A DNA stretch of 64,000 nucleotides from Adineta vaga (taxonomy: Eukaryota > Animalia > Rotifera). Position numbers and translations under genes: made by a program. The stretch spans positions 13,144,001 to 13,208,000 of the forward strand of contig CP075497.1 in assembly GCA_021613535.1 (NCBI GenBank), written 5' to 3'. The notes under the pieces are model-generated. The model did no database searches and had not been told where the DNA came from. It saw only the letters and a program-made list of their open reading frames with translations. Positions 497 to 62,523 of this stretch are shown here, one piece after another; the first letter of the stretch is position 1; the number at the start of each line of letters is the position of its first letter.

Positions 497-566
497 AGGG
501 TGTGGGTGAGATAAGAGTGAAGGTGAGAGCGGGTAAAAATAACAACGATACCCGCACCCACACCTT
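497..566. repeat. telomeric-hexamer hairpin element
   Basis: agggtgtgggtgag...cccgcacccacacct; spacer ataagagtgaaggtgagagcggg is shared with 23622-23716. Confidence 0.8.
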
Positions 567-1470
567 TCGTAGACAAATTTAAATATTTTGAAGGAAGTAT
601 ATTTGGTGGTGAGAAGAGCGAGATTCTTCGACTCGAAAAAGTACAAAGTATTTTCGCATCATTAGTAGTTCAAGTTCTAACAGATCATGTGAAAAAAAAG
701 CTGTTTACTTGAAGTTTGTATTGCCTACACCTGACTTGCTGAAAGTCCCTTTAATCTCTTCTTTAAAATGACGTAATAAAATATGCGTATTAGAAAAATC
801 AGTACCTATAATTCACTCAATCGTCATGCAATCAATGAAGAGGATTATCATAAATATTGTTTTCAAGTACTTTTTATTTTATTCATCTTAAAAGATTTAA
901 TGATGCATACAAAATAAAAATGCCTATGGTTTTATTACTTATTGTTTGATGAATCGATGGAAAAAATTGTTAATTTGCAAGTCTAATCAACATAGTTAGC
1001 AAATCTTATTTAAGAACAGTTCTTCATTTTATACTGTCTTTATAATCTTTACGATACATTCGTTTCTTGTAATACCTGCTGATTATACACTTGTGAGATG
1101 ATATTTTTTTCAATTCTAGTTCTAATTTTGGCTCCAGCAAAGATTCTTGGTCCGAGCATGTGTTCTGAGTATGTTTCTCTTTTGATTGTAGTAGCCGTAT
1201 TAACAATACGGGCTTTTTATAGGAATACAGTAGACTCAAACGTGGGAGTTAAAACTAGTCTAGTTATAACGTGTACATTGCATTTGAAGTCCAAGGTTAA
1301 CTGAGTCTTTGATAGTTCTCCAATGGTTGTTTCTAATTAATTTAGTCACCTACTAACACGTTCTAAGAGCTTGAAATTACATTTATAGATTTTTTCAACA
1401 AACATAAATATCAAATAACGATACTTAATCGGATCATTTTAGATAATATAAGAAAGAAATTTATCAAAAT

Positions 1471-2058
1471 ATGTTCCTTAACACTACTTATCTATCAATG
1501 ATGTTATTTTCAATTTATTTAATTTTCTTGATCAGAATTGATCAAATTAGTGCTCAAGGTGATGTCAAAGAACGAGCTGCAAATTTTCTGGCTCGTGTTG
1601 GTTTAACTATTCCTCCACAAGGCGTAGGTGAAGATACATGGATAGCACTTTGCGAAGTGAAAGCTCGCATTACGGATGCTGGAATATCACCGAAAAGGGA
1701 CACACGAACGTGTACAAAAACAACAGGTGGAGAAATTTTAGAAACACGTGTCATTCGACGTGAGGAATGGCGTTGTTCTTGGTCAACAGAATCATATTCT
1801 TCTGGTACTTTACTTAATTATCAAAATACACTTGTCAACCAGTATAATTCTGGTATAAAACTGGCTATAGAAGCAGGAGATAAAGCGGCAGTTGATTATA
1901 TGGAAACAATGAAAAGTCAACATACTCAAAATCTACAAGTGGCGACTAACCGAGATGCAGCTAAGCTAACAGCAACAGCTACAAGTGCAGCTTGGTGGAG
2001 ATCAGGTGCCAACTGTGATTTGGTACTTGAAGGTCGTGTGCGTCGTCTGGCCTATTGA
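1471..2058 (+). CDS. secreted protein of unknown function (195 aa)
   Basis: Intronless ORF with hydrophobic N-terminal signal, 4 Cys and higher GC than its flanks; AATAAA downstream at ~2215. Confidence 0.7.
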   Translation: MFLNTTYLSMMLFSIYLIFLIRIDQISAQGDVKERAANFLARVGLTIPPQGVGEDTWIALCEVKARITDAGISPKRDTRTCTKTTGGEILETRVIRREEWRCSWSTESYSSGTLLNYQNTLVNQYNSGIKLAIEAGDKAAVDYMETMKSQHTQNLQVATNRDAAKLTATATSAAWWRSGANCDLVLEGRVRRLAY

Positions 2059-3078
2059 TTTCTTTTATTATTATTATTAAAAAGAAATTTCAAAAATATG
2101 ATAATCCATATTTTATTTACATTTTAAATTTATTACATTGCTCGCTTACAAATCATATACTTAAGAATTGAGAGATTTTAATTGAATATATCAAATGTCA
2201 TTCATATGATAATCAATAAAATTTACATCATAAAAAATTCTTACAGAAAAAAATCAGATTCTTTTTTAGTTGTAGTATATAGATTTATTATTTTGATTAT
2301 ACAATAAGTAACAGTTCAGCGACTGGGCGCCTTTACGTAAGAATCTATATTATTCTCTTGGGTATAAGCGTATAAGATGGATATTTTATCCTCACCCAAA
2401 CTCTCATAAAACATCACTGCTTCGTCAAGTCTCGCCATGAACTTTCAGTTGAAATAGAAACACTGATTTAAAAAGAAAACAACAGAACAGCATCATCTAT
2501 TCAAATTAGTTTCACTTAGTTTGATTGCTTTGAACAATTACAAACAAGTAAGACGATATTTTTCTCATCAATATTATATGGATACAATACAATACCTGTT
2601 TTTCCTCCTCTTGACACGAACAAAACTATGTGATGACCATCCATAACGATTCGAAATTTGATCTTCTTCGCTCCATTCTGATTTCTCACCGAGCAATTAC
2701 CATGTTAATGTCGCGACTAATTTGTATTACACCGCACCCCAAAATATATGGATTTATTTATGTACTTTAATAATTTCAGGTTATAGTCAAGTGTTTTATA
2801 AATCTCGTAAAACGAAAATTGTTACAGATTCTCGATACTGATTTCTTTCAACTCAACAACGTCAAAAAATACACATTCATTAATACTAAAAATCATCTTG
2901 TATCTGAATGTCTCAGATCCATAGTATAGTTTATTGTTGGATAGATATGTTAAAAGAATGAGACAAAAACAACATGAAAATATGAACATGATGTAACACA
3001 GAAAACAGAATGAAAACGAGACAATCAAAGAAGATGCGCATGTCGCAGAAAAGAAGAAATATGTGTACGTGATAATTA

Positions 3079-3129
3079 GCAAGAGGGTGTGGGTATATCT
3101 TCTTCACTCACATCCACACTCACCCTTGC
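3079..3129. repeat. telomeric-hexamer hairpin element
   Basis: gcaagagggtgtgggt-atatcttcttcact-cacatccacactcacccttgc, ~30 bp downstream of the homeobox ORF stop. Confidence 0.8.
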
Positions 3130-3156
3130 AAGTAAATGAAGTGGAGGAATTCTATT

Positions 3157-3600
3157 CTATGCTTGTCGTTTATTTTTCATTCGTCGTCGTACAAACCATT
3201 GTCTAATTTCATATTCATCAAGTTGTAATTCTCGAGCAATAGCAACACATATATGTTTATCTATATAATGACAAAAATGAAATTCTGTCTCTAAACGTTC
3301 AAGTTGTAATGGAAGAAAACAACGACGTTGACATACATGTGTATTATTATCGAGTATATAACGCGTTGCATCGACAAAAGCCTTCGATATAGAAGATTTA
3401 TTATTCGTTTTGCTTAATTGTCGAACAAGTTGATGAAATTGTTTGTTTTCAGATATAGATTGAACCAACAATGCATGTTTTTGATTAACAACATCTAAAT
3501 CAGAATTATTATTACATTTTTTTATGTAAAATTTAGTAAAAAAAGCGAACTTACTTCGAGATTGTTTCTTTTTCTTATTCTTTTTAGGCATTTTATTCAT
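3157..3600 (-). CDS. divergent homeodomain protein
   Basis: C-terminal RRCFLPLQLERLETEFHFCHYIDKHICVAIARELQLDEYEIRQWFVRRRMKNKR fits the homeodomain helix pattern. Confidence 0.7.
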   Translation of the reverse strand: MNKMPKKNKKKKQSRSKFAFFTKFYIKKCNNNSDLDVVNQKHALLVQSISENKQFHQLVRQLSKTNNKSSISKAFVDATRYILDNNTHVCQRRCFLPLQLERLETEFHFCHYIDKHICVAIARELQLDEYEIRQWFVRRRMKNKRQA

Positions 3601-4104: not shown

Positions 4105-4238
4105 AGGGGGGGGGGTAGGTTAAAAGAGATTGCTCACAAATATAGTGTTTAACCACACCCTCAAATGATCTAACAGGAATAATAATAACAGGGATGAGGT
4201 GAATATACATGAGACTATACTCTTAGCCCACATCGTCA
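4105..4238. repeat. two adjacent degenerate hairpin elements
   Basis: agggggggggg...aaccacaccctcaaa (4105-4165) and gggatgaggtg-catgagactatactctt-agcccacatc (4190-4238). Confidence 0.6.
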
Positions 4239-4289
4239 GATTTAATTTTAAAATTTTGTTTTCAGATGTCATTCTCTTTATGAATAATT

Positions 4290-5496
4290 TTTATTTAAAT
4301 AATAATTTAAATAATTCTTGACGAAATATTTTTCCTGTAAGTGTATAAACAAAAAACATTATTGAATTATTAATATACGTTATTAAAATATTAATTTGTG
4401 CTATGAAATTTTCAATTTCTTGTCGTTCTATAGATTTGTCTGTATAAACTGTTTAAGATGAATAAAATTTATAAAAGCCCATTGGTGAACTAAATACAAT
4501 AAGAATTCCAACCTGAAAAAAAAATAAATGCGGAAACGTCCGATTTTATCCGAGAGTTATGTATACTGCAAAAAGTGTAGGAGAGAGATGAACCATTCTG
4601 GAATGTCTACGCATCAAAATTACCATGATAAATTTTTCGATGAGCAAGATTTCTGATGACTTGTGGTTGAATCTATAAAAGATCTATGATATTTCTTCGA
4701 ACTCGACCAAGATATTCATGAGACAATAATGTACACAAAGTTTCAGCTCAATTGAATGTAATTGTGAAGACTTATCGTGTAAACGGACGGGCATACAGAC
4801 TGATTATATTAGTATACTCACTTTTTGAGTACACATAAGAAAAAAATTCGTTGAACTTACTTGAACAAATAACATTGTCATTATTTGTAATTTGAACTTG
4901 TCGTCGACTTTTTTGAATACTTTTTAATGTTAAATAACCAAAAAGAATCATTAAACAAATTGGAATTGTTGTATAAAAAATCATTAAAAAAAGTCCATCA
5001 ATAATTTGACATTGAACTGGGATTGTATAACATGATGCAATGTATTGACATTTCCATTATTAAAGCAATAAATTGTTTCACCAAAAATGAAACATCCAGA
5101 AAAAATGACCATTGAAATTGTTTTATAAACTGTCTTTTGATTACAAAGATTTCGAAATGAAACAGATGTTGATGAACTACAAAATCGATCAAAACATCCA
5201 AGTGTTATAAACCATGATGTACAATAAAGACAAAGATATGAAAGAAAATATCGAATTTTGCATAAAATTGAAGAATATGAAGTATAATCAAGATTAAAAC
5301 CATTTAATAAACGACTCATTAAACCAATATAAAGTGCCAATAGACTAACTATTGTTGTTGATAATAAATATTGAACACAAGAATTTTTTCGTAAAGTTCC
5401 AAATGTACCAAATATAAGAAGTGGAATTGGAAAATAACGATTAATAGTTGATGAATAATATGTCCAATATGATATCGAAGATATATTAATAGACAT
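4290..5496 (-). pseudogene. rhodopsin-class GPCR pseudogene (copy 1 of 3)
   Basis: Paralog of 27422-28754 with a 33-nt deletion (NIINILVFTRK lost), a 1-bp frameshift near 5040, an ~80-nt deletion near 4890 and an in-frame TAA in exon 2. Confidence 0.85.
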
Positions 5497-5508
5497 TTTT
5501 TATTTCTA

Positions 5509-5562
5509 TTTGAGGGTGTGGGTGTCGTTATTCTCTTCACTTACCCATACCCACACTCTTGC
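5509..5562. repeat. telomeric-hexamer hairpin element at a duplication breakpoint
   Basis: ttgagggtgtgggtgt-cgttattctcttcactt-acccatacccacactctt; homology of GPCR copy 1 to copies 2 and 3 stops here. Confidence 0.85.
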
Positions 5563-6310: not shown

Positions 6311-13983
<7,673 letters not shown>

Positions 13984-14098
13984 TCTGAACTTGAAAAAAG
14001 AAGAAATTTGTTTTTGTAATGGCTATTGATACGCAGTAAAAATGTGTTGATTCTTTTCTTTATCTACAACCAAGTAAAAAGTACGATATGTTGGAAGT

Positions 14099-14151
14099 AG
14101 GGTGGGTGTGGGTGTTCATGAGGCTATAATCTTAACCCACACCCACCTCAA
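14099..14151. repeat. telomeric-hexamer hairpin element
   Basis: agggtgggtgtgggtg-ttcatgaggctataatctta-acccacacccacctcaa, ~115 bp after the ABCC stop; spacer nearly identical to the one at 33381. Confidence 0.85.
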
Positions 14152-14578: not shown

Positions 14579-14606
14579 TGGGTGTGGGTGTGGGCGGGTG
14601 TGGGTG
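14579..14606 (+). repeat. solo (TGGGTG)n arm
   Basis: tgggtgtgggtgtgggcgggtgtgggtg with no adjacent C-rich arm. Confidence 0.7.
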
Positions 14607-15043: not shown

Positions 15044-15105
15044 AGAGTGGGTGTGGGTGTGGATGTGCTTCAGTCGTAGTTCCTACACCCACCCACCCTC
15101 AAGAT
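15044..15105. repeat. telomeric-hexamer hairpin element
   Basis: agagtgggtgtgggtgtggatgtg...cctacacccacccaccctcaagat. Confidence 0.85.
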
Positions 15106-16020: not shown

Positions 16021-17525
16021 TTAAATAATAATTAAATCGTCTTCAGATTCTTCTATCATCATATTCCAATCAATTAAATCACTATCATCATCTTCCTCAT
16101 TAATATCTAAAGATGACGATCGTCGATTGGTTATAAAAAGAAATCTAGAATATAGACAAATAAGAAAGATTAGTATTAAAATAAATAACAAAGATATATT
16201 TCATTACATATTAAGAATCAATGGAATAATTGAAAGTCCAATAGTAATGATAAAAATCAAATATGATAAATGATTAACAGTTAATTCATAAATCCAATTA
16301 AAAAATCCATTACCTAATATTGTACAAATTGTATTTATCATTGTAAGAATTGTAAATATGAAATGATATTCATTTTCAGTAACATATTTTGTTATCATTG
16401 ACCATGTTAAAGACTTTTGATAATCAAGAAATGGTATTAGACATAATGTTAAATATAAATGCCAATTTTGTTTTGCAAATATAAACCAAATTGATATTAA
16501 AATCAAACAAGTATGACTAAATGAACATATAATTGAATCATGAATTGACATTAATGTAAAGACTTTCATTCCAAGTATACTAAATATTGCAATTAGAATT
16601 GAACGTACTGAATTATAATGTCCAATTTGTATTGATGACCAATTAAATGGTTTATTTAATAAATACCAAAGAAAATTTGACCATAATGCTGAATTTGCTA
16701 ATGAATAAAAAAGATATGAAAATAGAATTAAGAAAATATTTCGGAAATTTTTTTTCAACGAATTTATTTTTGACCAACAAGAACTTCGAATTTGTGTATC
16801 ATCATAAACTTCTACTAGTAATAAACTTCTTCTTCTTAATAATGAAGGTGAATTTTTAAAAAATATAATCACAATTAATATTGATAAAATTTGTAATAAA
16901 AGTCCAAAATAAAATAATTCAATAAAACCTCGATATGATATATAATAACCAACAGATAATTCTCCAATGGATGTTATACCTATCTTTATTGCTTCAAGAA
17001 TAACAAAAGAAATCGATCGATTAATATCTTTTGTACAATCAGTTGTATATAAATTTAAAACAAGATCTAAAACAAAACAAAAAAAGAAGAAATTTTCGAA
17101 AATTCTAAAATCTTACGACAAATTCCATCTGAACCAGTTAATGCTGGTATAAAAGATGATATATACCACCAATATTTATTTAATCGAAAATGAATAATTA
17201 ATAACCAAATAACAATTTCACTTGAATCACCCATAATTGAAAAAATTAAAAGAAATTTTCTTCCAATTTTATTTATATATATACCTAAGAGAAATGTTAT
17301 TAATATTAATGGTAAACTACAGAAAATATCTTTTTTAAAAACTAAATCAGCAGATTGTTCTTGTGCCCAAATTTCTGCATCATTTGAAGTGGCATTGTCA
17401 TGTGTTTTATTAAAATTTACTAAATAATATGAATAAATATATTGACCAATTGTTGATTGTATACAATCTGTTAAACTTTGAAGACAGATTACAGTACCTA
17501 TTAGATATATGTTTACATCGGACAT
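16021..17525 (-). CDS. MFS transporter, SLC46/PCFT-like, 3 exons (17525-17117, 17066-16208, 16144-16021)
   Basis: Spliced frame is continuous; multiple TM helices; KIGRKFLL and YLLNKPFNWSSIQIG motifs. Confidence 0.8.
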
Positions 17526-17991: not shown

Positions 17992-18052
17992 AGGGTGTGG
18001 GTGTGGGTAAGAGAAGAAGATATACCCATCCACACCCAGCCACACCCTCAAG
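17992..18052. repeat. telomeric-hexamer hairpin element
   Basis: agggtgtgggtgtgggt-aagagaagaagatat-acccatccacacccagccacaccctcaag. Confidence 0.9.
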
Positions 18053-18342: not shown

Positions 18343-18470
18343 AGGGTGTGGGTGTGGGTGTGGGTGTGGGTGTGGGTGGGTGTGGGTGTGGGTGCGGGTG
18401 CGGGTGCGGGTGAGAGTGTGTATATTGATGCTATCGAACAGCCCACATCTATATCCACACCCACATCCAA
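18343..18470. repeat. hairpin element with an expanded interstitial telomere-like (GGGTGT/GGGTGC)n arm
   Basis: About 11 hexamer units at 18344-18412, then a spacer and a short ccacacccacatcc arm. Confidence 0.85.
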
Positions 18471-21156: not shown

Positions 21157-21216
21157 TTGAAGGGGTGGGTGTGGGTATCAGTGAATACAAGAGACCCACA
21201 CACACACACTCACACC
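21157..21216. repeat. telomeric-hexamer hairpin element
   Basis: ttgaaggggtgggtgtgggt-atcagtgaatacaagag-acccacacacacacactcacacc. Confidence 0.8.
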
Positions 21217-22005
21217 ATACTGTCATCCTCACCTTTACATATGAAGCTAACAGAAAGATCGCCGAATTTCCAAGTCATTCTAGACCAATGAACATTATTT
21301 ATTATAAATATTATCTTACAGGACAAAAAGTAGACAGTTATATTGCTTTTTTTAAACATATTAACAATATCCACCACCACCCAAAGCACCTAGTTCTGCA
21401 TCAAGAAACGGATGAGACATTGTGTTGATCTTTGTTTGATAATCGTCGAATGAAATAATAAAAATGTTATTAACGAGAAACGTTACTCATTGTATTTATA
21501 TATTTATTGCGCGTATGAGATGAGTATATAAAAAGAACATCACAAAACGCCCATTAACTCATTCTCTCTTTGACGTCACGAACGTATACGTCATATCGAC
21601 TGTTTCTAAAGTTTACCATTGGCGTATTTTACTTTTGATACATAGTACATTCTCAACTTGGAAAAGATCCGTATATTTTTTTACTGTTGAGGAAGATATC
21701 AGTTGTTATCGTTTTGTCGTATGCCATACATCATTCACCTCGTTTGGCGTTTGTTGCTGAAACAAAGGACCTTGAGACACTCGAATACCATTTAGTATCA
21801 ACTGTGCCTCTTGTGTTCAATCGAAACTATTCTATAATCCTAGATAACACGCTTTTTCATCCTGTTAATAATGATCAATTCAAATATTCAATGTCTTATT
21901 AATTGAACTCGGGCGAAGTTTTTCCTCATTTGTCGTTTTTGATTTTTCGATTAAATATCTTTATTATACAACTTGAATGAATTTTAAATTGCCTTATCAA
22001 GAAAA

Positions 22006-22069
22006 TGTGGGTGCGGGAGAGGGTGAGATTAATGTGTAAATATACTATCCTCACCCACACTCTCAAGAT
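22006..22069. repeat. telomeric-hexamer hairpin element
   Basis: tgtgggtgcgggagagggtgag...cctcacccacactctcaagat. Confidence 0.8.
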
Positions 22070-23621: not shown

Positions 23622-23716
23622 TGTGTGTGTGTGTGTGTGTGTGAATGATATAAGAGTGAAGGCGAAAGCGGGCGAAAAGAACCAGAAATGATTAAAAAAT
23701 TTTCTCACACACTCCG
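23622..23716. repeat. hairpin element whose left arm is a (TG)11 microsatellite
   Basis: (tg)n-ataagagtgaaggcgaaagcggg-...ctcacacactcc; spacer matches the 497-566 element. Confidence 0.65.
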
Positions 23717-23896
23717 CAACGAAAGTCCATACTCTCACCCAAAATTTCAAATGAGCCTTCACTGATATTTTTTTACCCTTGACTCTGACACTAACACAAA
23801 CCGACAGACAGACAGACAGACAAACTGGTTTTTTTTTTCATATGATCCTCCCTACAGTCGAGGGAACATGAAATTATCTAAAGAAAAACGGAAGGG

Positions 23897-24223
23897 TGAG
23901 GGTGTGAGTTGAAATTAGTTAATAAAGAATTATAACTATTAATCTATAGGACTTGTGTACGTAGAAATTCTCTTAAAAATTCAATAAGGAAGTATTTTTA
24001 CGTTGTCTTTATTTAACACAGGAGAAAATCGGATAGTTGAATTGGTAGAATAGCCGACCGGTTTTTGGAAGATGTACGTTCGGGTCCTGCTCTAATTTTA
24101 TGATGCTTGTTCAATAAGTTTTCCGTACTTATTGAATTTTCAAGAGAATTTCTATGTGGACAAGTCCCATAGATTAATAGTTAGAATTCTTTACATTAAC
24201 TAATTTAAACTCACACCCTCAAG
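23897..24223. mobile_element. ~330-bp foldback/MITE-like element with ~90-bp inverted arms and the hairpin-family termini
   Basis: 23897-23988 is the imperfect reverse complement of 24128-24221; ends are tgagggtgtgag...ctcacaccctcaag. Confidence 0.85.
24027..24098 (+). pseudogene. degenerate tRNA-like sequence inside the foldback element
   Basis: A-box-like tagttgaattggtaga and B-box-like gttcgggtcc at tRNA spacing; cloverleaf stems pair with about one mismatch each. Confidence 0.65.
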
Positions 24224-24401
24224 TTTAAAACTCTTTTCGACTTCTACGTGTACGACTATTAGCACAGATTATCGATTGAATTATGTATTTCATATCGGTA
24301 AATCATTAGCAGTCAATTTCGAAAAAAAAAAATTCAAACAAAAAACTGATATGAATTAGTCACAATCAATAATACCAGCAATGATACACACTAGAAAATT
24401 A

Positions 24402-26987
24402 TCATTCTCCTAATAAATTAAAATAACGCATTCCCCAATAACTTATTAAGAAAGGAGTTGGATCTGTTTCCAAAAATCCATCACCACTATCCAAATCGTA
24501 GACATCATACTTTATATCAATGGTTCGTTCATCAGGAGGTAACATTTTTAACGAACGAAGTGCTCTCTCCGTATCACATTCAGCAGGTACGTTACGTTGG
24601 ACATCCAATCGATCACTATTGAATTGTGGCCAGTTGACAAGTTCCAATGGCCAACGTTGCATATACCATATTCCATCCTTTGACAATGAATTGCAATCAA
24701 ATTCAGGAGAAGATCTACGAATTCTTTTGAATAAATGTCGAGTTTGATTAACTTGACCAGTAGCATAACAATAGATGAAGTTATAAAATGGTGATTTGTC
24801 CATTTGTTTGTATTTATGTGCTAGATCTAATCCAATCATCATATATTCCAATAGTTTATCACTAACTAATTGTGCATGTTTCTTCTGTGTCATAGATAAA
24901 GTAGACGTTGAAGTAAGTTTGTTGATTGCAGAAACTAAATTAAAATAGGACAAATAAGCCAACTGATCATTCCAAAATTTAACTTGACAAACTGCAATTA
25001 TTTTTTGATTAATGATATTAACATCATAACGATAAGTTTCAATAAGAAGTTTAGTAGCATTAAGAAAACGTTCATCACCACTGTAAGCATATGTTTGAAT
25101 TAGAAAAGCCAATATTTCGAGACTACCAAGACCCCGCTCATCTACATAGTCAACATCACTGTTTATATCTAATGGATTCCAAACACCCCTCTGAGTACCA
25201 TTCACGCCTTCCAAATACCAGTCATGAGTTAAAATATGATTAGTGAGATTGAATAGCAACATGTAAGCTCTTTGACGTTCATCCTCATTACTAGCCAACA
25301 AATCATGTACTAATGGATAAACAAATTCATGTCCAACAGCCTCATCAGATGAAGTATCACCCTCGTATTGAAGAGTTGGATAAACAGGAGACAAATACCA
25401 TTTATGCGGAGCAGGAGGAACATCAGTGCGTTTAGCAATTGAACGAGCAGGATAACCAGAAATACCAGTGACTTTATGAAGAAGTTCCAATACTTCAAAA
25501 TGAGTCCAGGCAGATGCTTTGACTGTGACGTCTTGAGTTACTCTATAGCGAAAGATTTGACTACTTAAATACATTGATGTCCGTAGACCATCATTGTCAT
25601 CTGCTTCTTTGACACAAGTACGACTATCTCCCCATGATGACATACGACAACTCGATACCAAATTATATTTTTCATGTCTACCTGTTTGGTTAAAGAAGTC
25701 TTGAAAATGTTTTGCTTTTTGTGCCAACGTCCACATCTGAAAGTAAAGTATAGCTAAGCCTTTACTGGTGACTGCTACTGCAGTACTGCCTAGAGTAGTG
25801 GGTGCGTTACTTTCACGACTCAATACAGCCAATGAAACTACATTGACCAATGAATCGCGATTAGGCATATATCGGGCACTATTAAATACACGCCAAGCAT
25901 TTATATCAGTATCGTTAGGATCAAAGCGTATCATTCCACGAATAGTACCTAACCAAACTCGACTATCAGGTAATGTTGAATGACTCACACCCAACGTAGT
26001 AATATTAGCAAATGGTAAATGACCAATATCTGATCCGGGATTGGAAATTTGTCCTGCTAATCTAGAAAAAAACCAACGTGCACACCCTGTCGACATGATA
26101 ACTGGCGAAAGAAGAGTAATGCCAGTTTCTTGTCCTATCCATAACTTATCTTGACCATTATTATATACTAATGAAGTGATAGGTGCATCAATGAGTCCAG
26201 TAATCAGTTCCAAACGCCAATTTTCATCATCATCAGCGTCATATGAATAAATCCAGAGTTTAGTTTGTGTGCCAATAAAAACTGTCTTATGTTGTGAACT
26301 CCATGCTAGAGAAGAAACAGATTCATTAATTTCATTAATGTAAGAATGAATAATAAATGTTGAAAGATCTAGTCCATGCAATCCTGTATTAGTAGCAATG
26401 TATAACCATCCTGCTGTTCCCAGATCATCTATAAATAAACCAGTTGCAAGGTTGGAAATATTTGCTAAGACAGAAGGAAATGCGATGCTTTTTATAATTC
26501 TACACGAAGTTGCATCCGATTGATTGCATAAAATAAATTGTATACGTTCTACGGAGATGAGAGCAGCTGTGTAAACCATAGCAGTAGTTTTATTATGCGA
26601 AACAACTAAAATGCTTTTAATGTCAATCTTGGGTAAAACTATAGAAGTATTATTGTCCGACAAAGACATCCAAGACATTTGTAATGTTTCAACTGTTGAA
26701 TTAGTACTTCGAGTCAATAACCAAAAACTTTGAGCAGCTTGATCAAAATAGTGTGGCAATGAAACAACTTGATATACATTTTGAATAGTAGTGAGTACTG
26801 GCCAAGCAGTAGATTCATTGGCAAATGGTGCAAATAAATAACGTTTAGCTATGACCTGTTCATATTCGATATCTGGGATGCTTGTCGGTAATATCTGATG
26901 AGCATCAGCCAGAGATTTGTTTTTTCCTAAAAATTGACCATTGACTATTATTGTGTAGAGAAAGAACCAAACGAATGTTGACCACAT
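24402..26987 (-). CDS. intronless secreted protein (861 aa), predicted beta-propeller plus alpha-helical catalytic-like domain; HGT candidate (copy A)
   Basis: Signal peptide; propeller-like LWIG/VWLGT repeats; DNDGL and GDTSSDE motifs; near-identical inverted paralog at 52887-55478. Confidence 0.85.
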   Translation of the reverse strand: MWSTFVWFFLYTIIVNGQFLGKNKSLADAHQILPTSIPDIEYEQVIAKRYLFAPFANESTAWPVLTTIQNVYQVVSLPHYFDQAAQSFWLLTRSTNSTVETLQMSWMSLSDNNTSIVLPKIDIKSILVVSHNKTTAMVYTAALISVERIQFILCNQSDATSCRIIKSIAFPSVLANISNLATGLFIDDLGTAGWLYIATNTGLHGLDLSTFIIHSYINEINESVSSLAWSSQHKTVFIGTQTKLWIYSYDADDDENWRLELITGLIDAPITSLVYNNGQDKLWIGQETGITLLSPVIMSTGCARWFFSRLAGQISNPGSDIGHLPFANITTLGVSHSTLPDSRVWLGTIRGMIRFDPNDTDINAWRVFNSARYMPNRDSLVNVVSLAVLSRESNAPTTLGSTAVAVTSKGLAILYFQMWTLAQKAKHFQDFFNQTGRHEKYNLVSSCRMSSWGDSRTCVKEADDNDGLRTSMYLSSQIFRYRVTQDVTVKASAWTHFEVLELLHKVTGISGYPARSIAKRTDVPPAPHKWYLSPVYPTLQYEGDTSSDEAVGHEFVYPLVHDLLASNEDERQRAYMLLFNLTNHILTHDWYLEGVNGTQRGVWNPLDINSDVDYVDERGLGSLEILAFLIQTYAYSGDERFLNATKLLIETYRYDVNIINQKIIAVCQVKFWNDQLAYLSYFNLVSAINKLTSTSTLSMTQKKHAQLVSDKLLEYMMIGLDLAHKYKQMDKSPFYNFIYCYATGQVNQTRHLFKRIRRSSPEFDCNSLSKDGIWYMQRWPLELVNWPQFNSDRLDVQRNVPAECDTERALRSLKMLPPDERTIDIKYDVYDLDSGDGFLETDPTPFLISYWGMRYFNLLGE

Positions 26988-27361: not shown

Positions 27362-27412
27362 AGGGTGTGTGTGTAGGTATATCTTCTTTACTCACACCCA
27401 CACCCTCAAGAT
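27362..27412. repeat. telomeric-hexamer hairpin element at a duplication breakpoint
   Basis: agggtgtgtgtgtaggt-atatcttctttact-cacacccacaccctcaagat; homology to GPCR copy 1 begins at about 27411, right after ctcaag. Confidence 0.9.
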
Positions 27413-27421
27413 GAATAGTTT

Positions 27422-28754
27422 TTATTTAAATAGTAATTTAAATAATTCTTGACGAAATATTTTTCCTGTAAGTGTATAAACAAAAAACATTATTGAATTA
27501 TTAATATATGTTATTAAAATACTAATTTGTGCTATAAAATTTTCAATTTCTTGTCGTTCTAAAGATTTGTCTGTATAAACTGTTAAAGAAGAATAAAATT
27601 TATAAAAACCCATTGGTGAACTGAATACAATAAGAATTCCAACCTGAAAAAAAAATAAATGCGGAAACGTCCGATTTTATCCGAGAGTTATGTGTACTGC
27701 AAAAAGTGTATGAGAGAGAGATGAACCATTCTAGGATGTCTACGCATCAGAATTACCACGAGAAATTTTTCGATGAGTAAGATTTCTGATGACTCATTTT
27801 TGAATGAATTTTTTGCGTTTGGATCTATAAAAGATCTATGATATATCTTCGAACTCGACCAAGATATTCATCAGACAATTATGTACACAAAAGTTTCAGC
27901 TTAGTCAAATGTAGTTGTGAAGACTTCTTGTGTAAACGGACAGACCGATCATAGTAATTTAATCACTTTTTGAGTACACATAAGAAAATATTTGTTTAAC
28001 TTACTTGAACAAATAACATTGTCATTATTTGTAGATCTTGTTTTCGTTTTTTTGTTAAAGAAATATTCTTTTGCATGATATATTTTCCATTCAATTTTAA
28101 TTGAATATTTGCAATTTTAACTTGTTGTCGACTTTTTTGAATATTTTTTAATGTTAAATAACCAAAAAGAATCATTAAACAAATTGGAATTGTTGTATAA
28201 AAAATCATTAAAAAAAGTCCATCAATAATTTGACATTCAACTGAGATTGTATAACATGATGCGACTGTATTGACATTTCCATTATTAAAACAATAAATTG
28301 TTTCACCAAAAATGAAACATCCAGAAAAAATGACCATTGAAATTGTTTTATAAACTGTCTTTTGATTACAAAGATTTCGAAATGAAACAGATGTTGATGA
28401 ACTACAAAATCGATCAAAACATCCAAGTGTTATAAACCATGATGTACAATAAAGACAAAGATATGAAAGAAAATATCGAATTTTACATAAGATTGACGAA
28501 GATGAAGTATAATCAAGATTAAAACCATTTAATAAACGACTCATTAAACCAATATAAAGTGCCAATAGACTAACTATTGTTGTTGATAATAAATATTGAA
28601 CACAAGAATTTTTTCGTAAAGTTTTTCGAGTAAAAACAAGAATATTAATTATATTTCCAAATGTACCAAATATAAGAAGTGGAATTGGAAAAAAACGATT
28701 AAAAGTAGATGAATAATATGTCCAATATGATATCGAAGTTGTATTAATAGACAT
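27422..28754 (-). CDS. rhodopsin-class (7TM) GPCR, 2 exons (28754-28005, 27643-27422), intact copy 2
   Basis: GTFGNII (TM1), CKIRYF, FDRF (DRY-like), FFVYTLTGKIFR (TM7/helix 8); phase-0 GT-AG intron. Confidence 0.9.
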
Positions 28755-29175
28755 TTTTTATTTCTATTTCTATGTTTTCTGTGAAAATGTATCAATTGAA
28801 TAGATAAACAAAACCTTTCGTTCTCTTTAGAATTTTCTTAGTTTAAATGAAGGAAACTAAGAAACGTCAATGAGTTATCTTTTCTTTAACCTCACGACAT
28901 GATTTCATCATGATTAACAATCACGTTACTGTAGATGTGTGTAGAAATCTTTTGAATTGAAAGTTATTATAATCAAAAAAATGAAGAGAAAGATAAGATG
29001 ACAAATGCGCTTATTAGAAGATAGTATTATTGTCTAGTACATTCTTTATTTTTTTTTTCAATAAATTTATTTATTCGACGAAGAAAATGCGCATTTTCAT
29101 TAAGACAAAAATTTACTTATCCGTACTGAGGATAACACTTTCATAGTAAAAAACAATCATCTATTTCAATTTAAA

Positions 29176-32595: not shown

Positions 32596-33091
32596 GATGC
32601 AATGTATTGACATTTCCATTATTAAAACAATAAATTGTTTCACCAAAAATGAAACATCCAGAAAAAATGACCATTGAAATTGTTTTATAAACTGTCTTTT
32701 GATTACAAAGATTTCGAAATGAAACAGATGTTGATGAACTACAAAATCGATCAAAACATCCAAGTGTTATAAACCATGATGTACAATAAAGACAAAGATA
32801 TGAAAGAAAATATCGAATTTTACATAAGATTGACGAAGATGAAGTATAATCAAGATTAAAACCATTTAATAAACGACTCATTAAACCAATATAAAGTGCC
32901 AATAGACTAACTATTGTTGTTGATAATAAATATTGAACACAAGAATTTTTTCGTAAAGTTTTTCGAGTAAAAACAAGAATATTAATTATATTTCCAAATG
33001 TACCAAATATAAGAAGTGGAATTGGAAAAAAACGATTAAAAGTAGATGAATAATATGTCCAATATGATATCGAAGTTGTATTAATAGACAT
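32596..33091 (-). pseudogene. 3'-truncated GPCR (copy 3)
   Basis: Nearly identical to 28258-28754 up to NGNVNT, then reads into the MITE. Confidence 0.85.
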
Positions 33092-33380
33092 TTTTTATTT
33101 CTATTTCTATGTTTTCTGTGAAAATGTATCAATTGAATAGATAAACAAAACCTTTCGTTCTCCTTAGAATTTTCTTAGTTTAAATGAAGGAAACTAAGAA
33201 ACGTCAATGAGTTATTTTTTCTTTAACCTCACGACATAGTTTCATTATGATTAACAATCACGTTACTTTAGATGTGTGTGGAAATTTTTTGAATTGAAAG
33301 ATAAGATGACAAATGTGCTTATTAGAAGATAGTATTATTGTCTAGTACATTCTTTATTTTTCTTCAATAAATTTTATTTA

Positions 33381-33448
33381 AGGTGGGTTCAGGTGTTTAT
33401 GAGGCTATGATCTTAACCCACACCCACACCCTAAAAAAAATATTTTTC
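33381..33448. mobile_element. hairpin element present here but absent from the paralogous site
   Basis: aggtgggttcaggtg-tttatgaggctatgatctta-acccacacccacaccct-A8-tatttttc, flanked by ttattta direct repeats; the paralog has a single ttattta at 29067-29073. Confidence 0.8.
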
Positions 33449-37191: not shown

Positions 37192-37260
37192 TAAAAAGAA
37201 AAAAAATGTATTTTTCATCTTAATAAATAATTCTTTATTTCTTGTCTTCTTATTTCATCT

Positions 37261-37325
37261 CTTGAGGGTGTGGGTGTGGGGTTGTATAAGGGACTCTTGT
37301 TAATTGACACCCAAACCCTCAAGAT
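37261..37325. repeat. telomeric-hexamer hairpin element (best-conserved copy)
   Basis: cttgagggtgtgggtgt ... acacccaaaccctcaag, 16/17 inverted match, ~70 bp after the exchanger stop. Confidence 0.9.
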
Positions 37326-39159: not shown

Positions 39160-39197
39160 AGAGGGCGTCAGTGTAAATACAAGAGACTTACACCCAG
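39160..39197. repeat. degenerate hairpin element
   Basis: agagggcgt-cagtgtaaatacaagagact-tacaccc; spacer shared with 21157; lies after the GIMAP AATAAA. Confidence 0.6.
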
Positions 39198-39419
39198 ATG
39201 GAAACACCGAAACTTAGTTCATATATTCCACATCTTCGTCATTTATCATTATACACCTATCACGTAGATATAGACCAACTTAAAATCTATCGCGTTATTC
39301 TCCATTGAAATTTCTAACACATCGTACTCTTACATTAGATTTTTATTGAAATTTTAATCACTTTTCGACAACATATTATGAATTATTTCCTATATATTCA
39401 AGTTCTTCGCCTTACAACA

Positions 39420-42227: not shown

Positions 42228-42286
42228 ATCTTGAGGGTCGCGGGTGTGGGTATGATGTTATAGTCAATACTAACACCCACACCCTT
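42228..42286. repeat. telomeric-hexamer hairpin element
   Basis: atcttgagggtcgcgggtgtgggt...aacacccacaccctt. Confidence 0.85.
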
Positions 42287-44441: not shown

Positions 44442-44505
44442 AGGGTGGGTGTGGGTGGGTGTGATCGGCATTCGTTCTTACTGTATCTCCACACACTCAC
44501 ACCCC
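44442..44505. repeat. telomeric-hexamer hairpin element
   Basis: agggtgggtgtgggtgggtgtg...ccacacactcacacccc; a 5'-truncated F-box fragment starts just after it. Confidence 0.85.
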
Positions 44506-52483: not shown

Positions 52484-52538
52484 GTGAGTGTGGGTGTCGG
52501 GGGTGAATTGTATTGATTAATTTCATTCACACCGTCAA
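52484..52538. repeat. telomeric-hexamer hairpin element
   Basis: gtgagtgtgggtgtcgggggtgaat...attcacaccgtcaa. Confidence 0.7.
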
Positions 52539-52886: not shown

Positions 52887-55478
52887 ATGTGGTCAACATT
52901 CGTTTGGTTCTTTCTCTACACAATAATAGTCAATGGTCAATTTTTAGGAAAAAACAAATCTCTGGCTGATGCTCATCAGATATTACCGACAAGCATCCCA
53001 GATATCGAATATGAACAGGTCATAGCTAAACGTTATTTATTTGCACCATTTGCCAATGAATCTACTGCTTGGCCAGTACTCACTACTATTCAAAATGTAT
53101 ATCAAGTTGTTTCATTGCCACATTATTTTGATCAAGCTGCTCAAAGTTTTTGGTTATTGACTCGAAGTACTAATTCAACAGTTGAAACATTACAAATGTC
53201 TTGGATGTCTTTGTCGGACAATAATACTTCTATAGTTTTACCCAAGATTGACATTAAAAGCATTTTAGTTGTTTCGCATAATAAAACTACTGCTATGGTT
53301 TACACAGCTGCTCTCATCTCCGTAGAACGTATACAATTTATTTTATGCAATCAATCGGATGCAACTTCGTGTAGAATTATAAAAAGCATCGTATTTCCTT
53401 CTGTCTTAGCAAATATTTCCAACCTTGCAACTGGTTTATTTATAGATGATCTGGGAACAGCAGGATGGTTATACATTGCTACTAATACAGGATTGCATGG
53501 ACTAGATCTTTCAACATTTATTATTCATCCTTACATTAATGAAATTAATGAATCTGTTTCTTCTTTAGCATGGAGTTCACAACATAAGACAGTTTTTATT
53601 GGCACACAAACTAAACTCTGGATTTATTCATATGACGCTGATGATGATGATGAAAATTGGCGTTTGGAACTGATTACTGGACTCATTGATGCACCTATTA
53701 CTTCATTAGTATATAATAATGGTCAAGATAAGTTATGGATAGGACAAGAAACTGGCATTACTCTTCTTTCGCCAGTTATCATGTCGACAGGACGTGCACA
53801 TTGGTTTTTTTCAAGATTGGCAGGACAAATTTCCAATCCTGGATCAGATATTGGTCATTTACCATTTGCTAATATTACTACTTTGGGTGTGAGCCATTCA
53901 ACATTACCTGATAGTCGAGTTTGGTTAGGTACTATTCGTGGAATGATACGCTTTGATCCTAACGATACTGATGTAAATGCTTGGCGTGTATTTAATAGTG
54001 CCCGATATATGCCTAATCGCGATTCATTGGTCAATGTAGTTTCATTGGCTGTATTGAGTCGTGAAAGTAACGCACCCACTACTCTAGGCAGTACTGCAGT
54101 AGCAGTCACCAGTAAAGGCTTAGCTATACTTTACTTTCAGATGTGGACGTTGGCACAGAAAGCAAAACATTTTCAAGACTTCTTTAACCAAACAGGTAGA
54201 CATGAAAAATATAATTTGGTATCGAGTTGTAGTATGTCATCATGGGGAGATAGTCGTACTTGTGTCAAAGGACCAAATGATAATGATGGTCTTTGGACAT
54301 CAATGTATTTAAGTAGTCAAATCTTTCGCTATAAAGCAACTCAAGATCCAACAGTTAGAACATCTGCTTGGACTCATTTTGAAGCATTGGAACTTCTTCA
54401 TAAAGTCACTGGTATTTCTGGTTATCCTGCTCGTTCAATTGCTAAACGCACTGATGTTCCTCCTGCTCCGCATAAATGGTATTTGTCTCCTGTTTATCCA
54501 ACTCTTCAATACGAGGGTGATACTTCATCTGATGAGGCTGTTGGACATGAATTTGTTTATCCATTAGTACATGATTTGTTGGCTAGTAATGAGGATGAAC
54601 GTCAAAGAGCTTACATGTTGCTATTCAATCTCACTAATCATATTTTAACTCATGACTGGTATTTGGAAGGTGTGAATGGTACTCAGAGGGGTGTTTGGAA
54701 TCCATTAGATATAAACAGTGATGCTGACTATGCAGATGAGCGAGGCCTTGGCAGTCTCGAAATATTGGCTTTTTTACTTCAAACTTATGCTTACAGTGGT
54801 GATGAACGTTTTCTTAATGGTTCTCAATTTCTTATTGAAACTTATCATTATGATGTTAATATTATTAATCAAAGAATAATTGCAGTTTGTCAAGTTAAAT
54901 TTTGGAATGATCAGTTGGCTTATTTGTCCTATTTTAATTTAGTTTCTGCAATCAATACATTAACTACTACGCCTACTTTATCTACAACACAAAAGGAACG
55001 TGTACAATTAGTTACCGATAAACTATTGGAATATATGATGATTGGATTAGATCTAGCACATAAATACAAACAAATGGACAAATCACCATTTTATAACTTC
55101 ATCTATTGTTATGCTACTGGTCAAGTTAATCAAACTCGACATTTATTCAAAAGAATTCGTAGATCTTCTCCTGAATTTGATTGCAATTCATTGTCAAAGG
55201 ATGGAATATGGTATATGCAACGTTGGCCATTGGAACTTGTCAACTGGCCACAATTCAATAGTGATCGATTGGATATCCAACTTAACGTACCTGCTGAATG
55301 TGATGCGGAGAGAGCACTTCGCTCGTTAAAAATGTTACCTCCTGATGAACGAACCATTGATATATGGAACTATAACGTCTACGACTTGGATGGCGGTGAT
55401 GGATTTTTGGAAACAGATCCAACTGCTTTCTTAATAAGTTATTGGGGAATGCGTTATTTTAATTTATTAGGAGAATGA
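52887..55478 (+). CDS. intronless secreted protein (863 aa), HGT candidate (copy B)
   Basis: Inverted paralog of 24402-26987; carries DNDGLWTSMYL and GDTSSDE. Confidence 0.85.
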   Translation: MWSTFVWFFLYTIIVNGQFLGKNKSLADAHQILPTSIPDIEYEQVIAKRYLFAPFANESTAWPVLTTIQNVYQVVSLPHYFDQAAQSFWLLTRSTNSTVETLQMSWMSLSDNNTSIVLPKIDIKSILVVSHNKTTAMVYTAALISVERIQFILCNQSDATSCRIIKSIVFPSVLANISNLATGLFIDDLGTAGWLYIATNTGLHGLDLSTFIIHPYINEINESVSSLAWSSQHKTVFIGTQTKLWIYSYDADDDDENWRLELITGLIDAPITSLVYNNGQDKLWIGQETGITLLSPVIMSTGRAHWFFSRLAGQISNPGSDIGHLPFANITTLGVSHSTLPDSRVWLGTIRGMIRFDPNDTDVNAWRVFNSARYMPNRDSLVNVVSLAVLSRESNAPTTLGSTAVAVTSKGLAILYFQMWTLAQKAKHFQDFFNQTGRHEKYNLVSSCSMSSWGDSRTCVKGPNDNDGLWTSMYLSSQIFRYKATQDPTVRTSAWTHFEALELLHKVTGISGYPARSIAKRTDVPPAPHKWYLSPVYPTLQYEGDTSSDEAVGHEFVYPLVHDLLASNEDERQRAYMLLFNLTNHILTHDWYLEGVNGTQRGVWNPLDINSDADYADERGLGSLEILAFLLQTYAYSGDERFLNGSQFLIETYHYDVNIINQRIIAVCQVKFWNDQLAYLSYFNLVSAINTLTTTPTLSTTQKERVQLVTDKLLEYMMIGLDLAHKYKQMDKSPFYNFIYCYATGQVNQTRHLFKRIRRSSPEFDCNSLSKDGIWYMQRWPLELVNWPQFNSDRLDIQLNVPAECDAERALRSLKMLPPDERTIDIWNYNVYDLDGGDGFLETDPTAFLISYWGMRYFNLLGE

Positions 55479-58094: not shown

Positions 58095-58100
58095 TATAAA

Positions 58101-58146
58101 TTGAGGGTGTGCGGGATCAAGGTATCTCTTCTTCATTCACACCCTT
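58101..58146. repeat. telomeric-hexamer hairpin element between convergent genes
   Basis: ttgagggtgtgcggg...ggtatctcttcttcatt-cacaccctt. Confidence 0.8.
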
Positions 58147-59362: not shown

Positions 59363-59414
59363 AGGATGTATGGGTATCGATTTTTTTATTTCAACCTACA
59401 TCCAACCTCAAGAT
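59363..59414. repeat. degenerate hairpin element
   Basis: aggatgtatgggt...cctacatccaacctcaagat. Confidence 0.65.
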
Positions 59415-59481
59415 ATGACGTCATGATAAGTTTATTTCTCATAGGTTATCGTTCAATCTTGACCTATTTATTTAATATTAG

Positions 59482-62212
59482 TCACTGTTGACCAACGACG
59501 ACGACGGCGAGATCGTTCGATGGTTGTATTTGTTTTTTTCTGGCAAGAGTTTGATAAAAACGATCATAGATTAAATGATATATTGGAATAAGTAATAATT
59601 TAACCAGAAGAAAAATTAAACCGAAAACTTCTAAAACAACAATGGTAAAAAGAAGACAACGAAAGATTACTTCTGTTTGTCGAGCAATAGGTTGTTGTAA
59701 ATTACTAATATAAAATATATTTTGTGTAATTATAATATTAATTGTAGTTTGTGTTCGATAAAAGAATGTATATCGATTTTCATTGGTAAATAATTGATCC
59801 GAATTAGCAGTTAATGAATAAGACCAAATAGCACTAAATTTAGGTGATCCATTATTATCTAATGGATCAGTTCGATTGATAATTTTTGTTAATTCAATTG
59901 GAAATACAATTGATTCAGCAAGAACTTGATCAAGTGATGATGAAATAAATGTTGAAGCAAAGTTCAATTTCATAACTATAAATCTTTCATTGAAAAAGAA
60001 AAATACAAATTATAGTTCTTTGACAATGTCAATAATAAAACTTACTTTCCATCTTCAATTTCTGCTTCAGGTGCACTAAGACCGAGTCGAATAGCTCCAA
60101 TAGTTTTTAATCCTAACAAAACAAGTTGAACACTCAATTCATGAATTGGTAGTACAATTTCTAAACTTAAAATTGTATTATTATAATTCATTGTACATGT
60201 AGTAATTGAGATTGAAATAATTTTATATCCATCATTACGTTGTAGATAAAATTGATCATTACAAGTATATGCTGTTTGAATTAAATCAATATTTAATGTA
60301 AATAATTGTGAATCAAGTAAATCAAATATTAATTGACTTTCTTTTGTTGTACGACGAGGATCCCATCGTTTTTGAGTTGTTGTAGTAAATTTTGCATTAC
60401 GTAAAGTAACATCACATGCAAATGAATTATTACCTTTAAGTTGTTCAATTGGATATTGATGAAGATATGCATTCGAAAAAACATATGCTGATATAATAAA
60501 AACGATAACTGCTGTTGTAATTAAACCACCAATCCATACCTAACAAAAATTGATGGTATATATATATATATATATTTTAATAATAAAAATACCTCTCCTT
60601 CACCAATTAAATCTATTTTTCGGAATATTTGTTTAGCACGATCGCGAATAGAATGTTGATGAGGATAAAATTTTTCTGAAAGTTCCATTCCAATAACTAC
60701 AATACAAACAATAATCATGACAAGTAGAACCCATGTTATAGGTGATACAAGTAAACAATGAATAGATTTTGTATTGAAACTAAAGATATTTTGCATAAGT
60801 ATATCATCAAAGACAATATTTTCAGGTGATTCAGGATATTCTTGATCTTGTTCAATTGATTCAAATGATGAATAACTAACTTCACCAACAGCTCCATATG
60901 GACAATAAAATTCTTTTGAACAATTATTTATTGATGATGAATAAGGATAACATAATTCAATTCCATAATAATCTCGACTTGTACCACGATTACAAGGAAG
61001 ATAACTTGTAACATATATACTTGTATTTGTATTTGCATAAGTATTCGGTGGAACACTAAGAATAGCAATACCATTACCAAAACGATCTAGAAGACCTAAA
61101 TGACCACTGGGAGAACATATGATACGAATAAAGGATGGATTCATTGATTGATGTAGAGTTTGTTGAGCATTTGGATACACAAGAATTGGTTGTGTTGAAT
61201 CATTGAAACCATCAGATTGAATATCATAAACATGTACTGATGATGAAATCCATTCATAACTTGAATATGAATAAACATTAGCTAAAATAACTGCTTTCTG
61301 ACATGTTTTATCTAACCATGCAACACTTTTCCCATAGCCCATTAAATTCATTCCTGTTTGACGTATACCAATTGGAGTTTGAGTATTATTTAATGAATAT
61401 AAAAAGACCGTGTTCAATGATTGAACACCAATGAGAACTTGTTGTGTTTGCCAACAGATACTTACGGACATAACAGATTGTGATGTATAAATTCGACTAT
61501 TAGTTATTAAACGAATAGAACGTGGATCATTCCATGAATATTGTACGACAGTATTAAGTGGATATGTACTTGTACTATATGGACATGATAAGGATGTATT
61601 TAATTGAACGATAAAACCACATTCAACTGCAATTGTTGCTGATGATTGACAATATCCAGCGATAACAGCATATTTTTCATTGAAATTAATATCCATAGCT
61701 CGAGGAGAAATATTTAGACTATTTGGCCAACTGATCAAATCAATAGTTGGAAATAATTGATAAAAAAATATAAAATCATCAGCAAAACCATATACACCTG
61801 TATCTTCTCCATTAATTGCAATGATAAAATTATCTTGTGTTGAATAATTTGAAATAATTTGTTCATCTTTCAAATGAAAAATACATGTACCATTACTAAT
61901 AAAGAAGCCTACAAGATTATTTCCCTGAAAATCAATACAATTGTAAATAAACGAGATATTATTCGAAGTTGGCACAATAACACTATAGACAAAATCACAT
62001 GATGTTGAATTATAAAGAACACGACATGAAGAACCGTTAGCATGTGGAAAGTATTCGACATACCAAACTAAAAATAAATTGTCAACACTAACCAAGAATC
62101 GATCATTTAACGCAATTTTTATTCCATAAAGATCATAATCTGTAGATACTTTCGTGTACATCAATACCGAAGGAATCCATAAAAACATAAGAATAATTTT
62201 CTCAAACGACAT
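59482..62212 (-). CDS. membrane protein with signal peptide and Cys-rich ectodomain, 3 exons (62212-60593, 60539-60046, 59975-59482)
   Basis: Long ORFs joined in frame by GT-AG introns; three hydrophobic helices. Confidence 0.8.
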
Positions 62213-62404
62213 TGTACAATTTTAATATTTTTAAAATGATCGATATTCTTCCGTTTTCATCGAGTATAATATAATATTAACTATAACGGAAATATTCTGT
62301 ATGTCATTTTTTTTGTTCATTTTGATGCATTCAGGAAATATACTTTTGATTAGAAAAAACACTTTCATTAATTGATTGTAATATAAATTATAGTGTTGTA
62401 CATT

Positions 62405-62523
62405 TTGGGGGTGTGAATGCGGGTGAAGAAGTGATACATTGACCCACACGCTCAAGATACTATCTATGAATGGGTGTGGGTATAGATGTAAGTATCGGCT
62501 CTACACCCACACCCACACCCACC
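62405..62523. repeat. two tandem hairpin elements between divergent genes
   Basis: ttgggggtgtg...acccacacgctcaagat (62405-62458) and tgggtgtgggt...acacccacacccacaccc (62471-62523). Confidence 0.85.

Follow-up and report, generated by a model that had tools for sequence, protein, structure and literature searches.

Telomeric-repeat hairpin elements of Adineta vaga and their possible origin in RNA-templated break repair

The locus and its hairpin elements

The window analysed here, a 64,000-nucleotide stretch of contig 6 of the bdelloid rotifer Adineta vaga (CP075497.1, positions 13,144,001 to 13,208,000), belongs to a genome of 100.8 Mb in six contigs with about 30% G+C. It is gene-rich, encoding a Na/H exchanger, rhodopsin-type receptors, an NHL-repeat protein and several orphan open frames, and it carries recent internal duplications. 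A lookup by exact protein sequence found no record of the gene models. Dispersed among these genes are short hairpin elements of 45–125 bp, the subject of this report, each made of a G-arm of GGGTGT repeats, a spacer of 9–40 nt and a C-arm. The first-pass annotation named TGTGGG as the telomere repeat of A. vaga, which is also what two publications state (PMC8494291, PMC7943196); for Philodina it named TGAGGG.

The dispersed family that this annotation described is real. The window contains 35 copies of GGGTGYGGG where shuffled sequence predicts 0.04, and a search with an 11-nt arm core (GGGTGTGGGTG, up to two mismatches) located 20 G-arm and 24 C-arm clusters. When arms at most 60 nt apart were counted as pairs, 16 ran G then C and one ran C then G, the latter being formed by two neighbouring elements, 62405 and 62471. 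The G-arm-first order also withstood controls with the arms exchanged: exact arms (GGGTGTGGGT-N10-40-ACCCACACCC) gave 694 matches genome-wide and the opposite order gave five, and a separate 200 kb of contig 1 contained 37 G-C, 3 C-G, 2 G-G and 1 C-C pairs, so that same-polarity pairs numbered only three there, against 37 in the G-then-C order. Predicted DNA folds of ten elements reach −7 to −16 kcal/mol (z-scores −1 to −5), and predicted stems measure 9–19 bp. Local densities give a very rough genome-wide estimate of 1,500–3,500 copies. The elements are thus a real, abundant and stereotyped class.

Directly before the GGGTG of the G-arm stands an outer consensus, or leader, (C)ATCTTGA, which is mirrored as TCAAGAT past the C-arm, and both element ends share an 18-nt consensus (ATCTTGAGGGTGTGGGTG) as a terminal inverted repeat (TIR). 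The 16-mer that joins leader and arm, ATCTTGAGGGTGTGGG, has 474 exact matches in the genome, equally on both strands, whereas its reversed control has none. The two ends carry the leader independently of each other (at both ends in 10 elements, at one in 35, at neither in 25); the match is nested outward from the arm and variable in length, many ends keeping only the last A, and an AT dinucleotide flanks CTTGA at about 75–80% of good ends. Arm lengths, from 10 to 75 nt, are likewise mutually independent. The two arms of an element pair no better than arms swapped between elements, and this comparison revealed no covariation; nothing therefore indicates selection for the hairpin or fold-back copying, and both were ruled out as explanations.

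Spacers fall into families, S1 (GAGTGAAGAAGATATAC), S2 (TAAGAGTATAGCCTGAC), S3 (TTAGATAGATGTAGTAC) and S4 (GAATACAAGAGAC) among them, which recur at unlinked loci in both orientations and occur only between arms, and about 37% of spacers are singletons. Polar addition from a chromosome end was discarded because spacer orientation is mixed on a single chromosome arm. At b31971–32075 (b denotes contig 1 position minus 15,900,000), two mirrored S1-type half elements stand about a 20-nt centre, a rare C-then-G arrangement; this lies in L019, one of the contig 1 segments examined locally and labelled with L.

The first-pass annotation listed 25 element starts in the window, and 16 of these are clear members. 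S1 spacers are found in the elements at 3083–3126, 17992–18052, 27362–27412 (where homology to the copy at 4280 begins directly past CTCAAG), 58101–58145, which takes about half of a gap of some 110 nt between convergent open frames, and 62408–62458, which has a complete right outer motif and is followed by the element at 62472–62520. An S2 spacer occurs at 14099–14150 and an S4 spacer at 21161–21218. The right outer motif TCAAGAT is also complete at 15044–15105 and 22009–22069, and its left counterpart ATCTTGA at 42228–42285; the best-preserved element, 37260–37325, has both and lies about 70 nt past the Na/H-exchanger stop codon. The 40-nt spacer of 497–566 holds a small inner palindrome, the element at 5510–5559 stands exactly at the end of homology to the G-protein-coupled receptor paralogues 28769 and 33106, and that at 18343–18468 joins a 75-nt G-arm (about 11 repeats, with GGGTGC variants) to a short C-arm. 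The element at 44442–44505 completes the clear set.

About six further members are degenerate and can be recognised because one arm is well preserved or because the spacer belongs to a shared family. These comprise 4105–4166, with a G-run as left arm and a good C-arm ending in CCCTCAAAT; 4190–4242, of family S2; 33381–33448, an S2-type element with a 16-nt A/T-rich tail that is a clean insertion relative to the copy at 29073 and is flanked by the 7-bp repeat TTATTTA; 39160–39198, of family S4; 52484–52537, located 5' of a duplicated 864-aa gene; and 59363–59414, whose right end reads CCTCAAGAT. The remaining three starts are weak or partial: 2358–2407 is heavily decayed, 7772–7799 is very short (end CACCCTCAAAAT), and 23622–23643 consists of a (TG)11 microsatellite and then a spacer akin to the one in element 497, with no C-arm. 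The window also contains a solo telomeric tract on the G-strand (14580–14606, + strand) and a long relative at 23893–24235, a 340-bp palindrome with inverted arms of about 90 bp and the same termini, whose decayed tRNA-like core is about 80–86% identical to some ten other loci; one of these core relatives, L033:8542–8613, obtains a real tRNA score in Rfam (47 bits).

Among the duplications, an inverted pair at 24402–26987 (−) and 52887–55478 (+) is 96% identical across about 2.96 kb and contains an intron-less gene of 862/864 aa with no Pfam match; at each copy a hairpin element lies about 80–120 nt past the end of homology. A rhodopsin-type receptor segment is present in three partial copies (4280–5511, 27411–29073 and 32596–33380), which are 88–95% identical and have differing truncation points.

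Genomic setting and junctions

The flanks of the elements are mostly non-coding. Elements lie between long open frames whether these run in tandem, converge or diverge; about 40% of the gaps of the latter two kinds contain one. Frequently they lie 35–150 nt 3' of stop codons. On contig 1, only 5 of 94 leader 16-mers fall within the central 2.5–11 Mb (8.5 Mb), and the rest lie in the outer arms. This skew, which puts most elements in the subtelomeric thirds of a chromosome, matches the subtelomeric regions of A. vaga, which are rich in transposons and foreign genes (PMC8494291). The family extends beyond this genome: Joint Genome Institute metagenomes yielded 16 low-GC contigs with the same arms and leader and different spacers. 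Two of them are not A. vaga, one matching the genome through the element only and the other having coding sequence 67–75% identical, so that at least one further bdelloid-like species has the family.

RNA contigs from three probable RNA runs support two spliced genes in the window, 13520–14063 (+) and 16100–16879 (−), with AT-rich GT..AG introns of 51, 56 and 63 nt (13605–13655, 13768–13823 and 16145–16207). Over four elements of the window, these contigs show neither splicing at an element nor coverage of it, and the transcript contigs of the gene upstream of element 14099, on the + strand, stop at 14063, in one case 36 nt short of the element. An RNA contig from another locus includes a whole S1-type element; some copies are therefore transcribed within longer RNAs. 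Introns or introners were rejected as an identity for the elements on the strength of these introns, none of which lies at an element, and of the mostly non-coding flanks. A trans-splice acceptor or start-codon context (CTCAAG|ATG) was dismissed because the G following AT is not conserved, a promoter-only or terminator-only element because all three types of gap hold elements, and a known RNA or tRNA because the window has no match in Rfam or ARAGORN.

The occupancy of convergent and divergent gaps, the position past stop codons and the presence of the family in a second species could all suggest selected cis-elements, such as insulators, bidirectional terminators, binding sites for telomere-binding or KLF-type factors, or cassette recombination sites. 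We hold this to be very improbable indeed, since the arms lack covariation, every gene orientation is represented, many copies are decayed, the RNA contigs show no processing role, and no recombinase or cassette exchange was seen. The analogy with integron attC sites that the first-pass annotation had drawn finds no support beyond the association with boundaries, which is explained otherwise.

That association is a matter of truncated homology. Similarity between paralogues or transposon copies ends at the outer edge of an arm at 5511 in the window, where a receptor copy is cut short, and at 27411, and on contig 1 at b73647, b111793/b136295, b153319, b156767 and b9288, the last being a half element. 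Two of these, b153319 and b156767, are truncated copies of a mariner-type transposase. Overall, 9 of 98 endpoints of BLAST alignments fall no more than 20 nt from an arm, compared with 3% of random positions. Past the element at such boundaries the sequences bear no relation to each other, and an element is missing from the partner copy at the corresponding position, so that these are junctions, neither insertions nor exchanges between pre-existing elements; recombination between pre-existing elements was rejected as the cause on the same ground. At several boundaries two to four bases of the flank also match the leader, in alignments judged by eye. No target-site duplication (TSD) was found in the eight copies with two good ends, where only an ambiguous palindromic AT is present, and clean insertions number one against about eight breakpoint contexts.

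A related mariner-type gene (Transposase_1, HTH_48) occupies L016:7321–8376 (+), and its truncated relatives, near b153319 and at b156389–156767, end at telomeric arms.

These junctions bear directly on a proposal of the first-pass annotation, namely that the elements are very small miniature inverted-repeat transposable elements (MITEs). Such tiny cut-and-paste elements would have TIRs that are telomere-like by chance, would perhaps insert at AT, and would be associated with breakpoints only secondarily. The proposal draws on the 18-nt TIR, which is kept here and in another species around a differing interior, on the 340-bp relative with the same termini, and on the AT that flanks CTTGA at most good ends. 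It is weakened by the lack of a TSD other than the ambiguous AT, which at 27411 belongs to the flank and is missing from the other end of that element, and by the fact that copies of transposons and genes break off at the element instead of continuing on its far side. Moreover, agreement with the outer motif varies in extent and is nested, not evenly decaying, and the termini equal a retroelement 3' end, as described below. The roughly 300 kb examined showed no autonomous partner bearing these termini. We consider a MITE origin decidedly improbable.

Shared termini with retroelements and the origin of the hairpins

Athena and Terminon, Penelope-like retroelements that occupy bdelloid telomeres and lack an endonuclease, carry a hammerhead ribozyme near the 3' end and close with an (ACACCC)n or (TCACCC)n tail, which pairs with the telomeric overhang (PMC6431247). 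A pattern combining the hammerhead core with an ACACCC tract has 32 matches at about 26 loci, and a pattern requiring the core and CCC-TCAAGAT after the tract has ten loci on four contigs, against none for its control. Three such hammerhead ends with C-tract and motif lie in the sequence examined locally, and one hammerhead was seen with a tail starting ATGACTAT. Because the terminal sequence is shared, the C-arm of a hairpin with its outer motif corresponds to a retroelement 3' terminus, and the G-arm with its leader to the inverse of that terminus. The leader is found mainly in hairpins, which account for 59 of 82 leader-bearing ends examined locally, against 1 of 82 at a hammerhead end. The hairpins themselves lack the ribozyme: no hammerhead was detected in the window (Rfam, E up to 1) or in the local hairpins.

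At L033:8807–8857, an alignment to Hammerhead_1 scores 23.9 bits, which is under the Rfam threshold, and is followed downstream by a 26-nt tail, a C-tract and TCTAGAT. The surrounding L033:8752–8900 (contig 1, about 16,078,750–16,078,900) is a mini-copy, of about 150 nt, of an Athena-like 3' end, in the order C-tract cap, 25 nt, hammerhead, 26-nt tail, C-tract and TCTAGAT. It is the same-polarity counterpart of the hairpins, and such normal truncated copies are rare.

Separately, L032:4944–6325 (−) is a reverse-transcriptase remnant (RVT_1, E 3.7e-07). A downstream frame there, with a Cys-x2-Cys...EH motif that recalls Penelope endonucleases and is unconfirmed by Pfam, runs directly into an S2-type hairpin with the end CTCAAGAT. 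The RVT_1 remnant beside this hairpin (L032:4944–5030) cannot be claimed as a truncation, since the frame merely enters the arm, a GIY-YIG domain is missing from the Pfam results, and further DNA copies do not exist.

The interpretation we favour, which we judge to have about an even chance of being right, is that the elements are scars of RNA-templated repair in which a break was healed and rejoined, two minimal end-copies of a retroelement or telomerase product being joined head to head. At a break, the 3' end on each side would be extended by a reverse transcriptase, either telomerase or an endonuclease-lacking Athena/Terminon enzyme, on an RNA whose 3' end would read (ACACCC)n-UCAAGAU. Each side would thereby gain (C)ATCTTGA and then GGGTGT repeats, entry into the template occurring at variable points through microhomology of a few bases. 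Both extensions would then be joined head to head, and the spacer would represent a further 15–25 nt of the template RNA, sometimes copied by one end before joining. The product would read G-arm, spacer, C-arm on both strands, and C then G would be impossible. Which enzyme acted, which RNA served as template, how the ends were joined and where the spacers came from are all inferred; the leader may come from a retroelement RNA or from a telomerase RNA on whose product a retroelement then lands.

Extension of both sides followed by head-to-head joining accounts for the exclusive G-then-C order, the independent arms and the variable leader entry, as well as for the lack of TSDs, the half elements and the position at junctions. 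It also fits the known habit of Penelope-like elements, whose commonest arrangement is head-to-head inverted truncated copies (PMC3846280). A report that fresh deletions in A. vaga lines carry telomeric repeats and pieces of Athena at their breakpoints (PMC13564844) agrees with it too. Of the origins that the first-pass annotation had entertained, a retroelement- or telomerase-templated break-repair scar proved the best fit, in view of the truncation and duplication boundaries, the lack of TSDs and the 3' terminus shared with hammerhead elements.

Several observations weigh against this repair-scar interpretation. Spacer families with fairly fixed ends (S1–S4 and others) recur at unlinked loci, which means that independent repair events would require a recurring template; they are the weak point of the interpretation and are only partly explained by it. 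The similarity of spacers to the three local hammerhead tails is not above chance, and pattern searches for a hammerhead followed by an exact S2 or S3 tail had no match. The idea that spacers are hammerhead tails was accordingly dropped, the likeness of S2 and S3 having been seen by eye only and the test against the three tails being non-significant. Furthermore, element 33381 is a lone clean insertion whose 7-bp repeat and A/T-rich tail resemble ordinary retroposition, and no de novo event was observed. Finally, of 15 long arrays beginning with the leader CTTGA, not one is located at the end of a contig, so the analysis offers no example of a present-day telomere that starts in this way.

This last result tells equally against pure telomerase healing, in which both break ends would receive short new telomeres and then fuse with no retroelement involved, the leader being a copy of telomerase RNA beside the template as at vertebrate TERC-ITS loci (interstitial telomeric sequences, ITS, that contain a copy of telomerase RNA). 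Geometry, independent arms, breakpoint position and absence of TSDs fit such a process, for which there is precedent (PMC2246262, PMC8537989), and Athena elements landing on the new telomeres would likewise yield the succession of hammerhead, C-tract and TCAAGAT. Recurrent spacers would be left unexplained, however, and a leader copied from telomerase RNA is only putative in bdelloids; on balance, telomerase acting by itself seems improbable.

The partly unexplained spacers, given the negative tail test and the failed exact searches, make a non-autonomous retroposon resembling a short interspersed element (SINE) the main and serious rival, albeit one we think unlikely. A small hairpin RNA (leader, G-arm, spacer, C-arm, UCAAGAU) would mimic the 3' end of Athena/Terminon RNA, borrow its reverse transcriptase and be copied whole onto free DNA ends, and the spacer families would be lineages of master copies. 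Fixed-end families that are confined to the space between arms and scattered over unlinked loci in either orientation are what this would produce; the terminus held in common with hammerhead-bearing elements recalls pairs of SINEs and long interspersed elements, and both the transcript that includes a whole S1 element and the clean insertion at 33381 accord with it. Among ten S2 copies, 8–9 retain the outer motif beside the C-arm and 3–4 beside the G-arm (manual count), a bias expected from 5' truncation of such an RNA, although it fits the repair-scar model as well. Against whole-RNA copying stand the singleton spacers, arm lengths that are independent within families, arms that pair no better with each other than when swapped, and the lack of polarity in family S1. 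Half elements at junctions are equally awkward for it, no promoter or master gene was identified, and the metagenome relatives have arms and leader in common with A. vaga and not spacers.

Bdelloids survive the shattering of their genome by drying and radiation, and foreign genes are unusually numerous towards the ends of their chromosomes. If the elements are repair scars, each marks an old break together with the template used, so that the family would be a countable and datable record of non-homologous repair and would tie telomere-attaching retroelements directly to genome maintenance. A broader claim, possible yet doubtful in our estimation, is that bdelloids use reverse-transcriptase end-bridging, in which each broken end is extended on an RNA of telomerase or Athena type before the two are joined. 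Thousands of mini-hairpins would then be a genome-wide fossil record of repairs, including the junctions that stitch duplicated, transposon and possibly foreign DNA into subtelomeres.

There are also consequences for annotation. A few thousand intergenic palindromes of 50–70 bp break short-read assemblies, and short-read DNA contigs do end at elements. The elements further inflate counts of 'telomeric repeats', and TGTGGG density serves as a subtelomere marker in PMC7943196 and PMC11258130.

Comparison with known systems

The first-pass annotation spoke of an undescribed class. We found no description of the stereotyped hairpin form in the literature, in a search that did not extend to the 2007 Athena paper or the Terminon paper, and to that extent the claim stands. 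The ingredients, in contrast, are already published: 'short stretches of telomeric repeats' in bdelloid subtelomeres (PMC2861651), telomere-capped Athena copies (PMC6431247), and telomeric and Athena sequence at breakpoints (PMC13564844).

The hairpins are like MITEs and foldback elements in being short, inverted-repeat, non-coding, dispersed and intergenic, and in having only their termini in common. They differ in lacking a TSD and a known transposase partner and in lying at truncation junctions instead of forming simple insertions. The ciliate telomere-bearing elements TBE1 and Tel-1 are also mobile DNA with telomeric-repeat ends, but they are multi-kilobase and encode a transposase, and they carry the C-strand repeat 5' on each strand, a geometry opposite to that of the hairpins.

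As in ITS, the hairpins place telomeric repeats at probable repair junctions without a TSD. TERC-ITS and short vertebrate ITS combine telomeric repeats with a piece copied from RNA adjacent to the template, inserted in one step at a double-strand break (PMC2246262, PMC8537989), and the hairpins may share this makeup. The vertebrate loci, however, contain a single tract with a single orientation and are counted in the tens per genome, whereas the hairpins have two inverted tracts around a spacer, are probably present in thousands of copies, and may have had a retroelement RNA as template in place of telomerase RNA. The neotelomeres and Athena fragments of experimental A. vaga lines (PMC13564844) involve the same organism, the same sequences and the same context of broken ends. 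Those events are terminal additions at unrepaired ends in a few samples; the hairpins are internal, two-sided, stereotyped and fixed in the reference genome.

Truncated copies of Athena and Terminon themselves share with the hairpins the C-rich ACACCC/TCACCC 3' tract, the same TCAAGAT extension and the subtelomeric location (PMC6431247, PMC3846280), as well as attachment to free DNA ends without a TSD and extreme 5' truncation, and Penelope-like elements share the tendency to form head-to-head inverted copies. Yet the hairpins contain neither hammerhead nor reverse transcriptase, having only 9–40 nt between their arms, and their tracts are inverted where a normal capped copy, such as that at L033:8752–8900, has tracts of the same polarity. 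Locally, they outnumber the recognisable Athena/Terminon parent ends by about 50 to 1.

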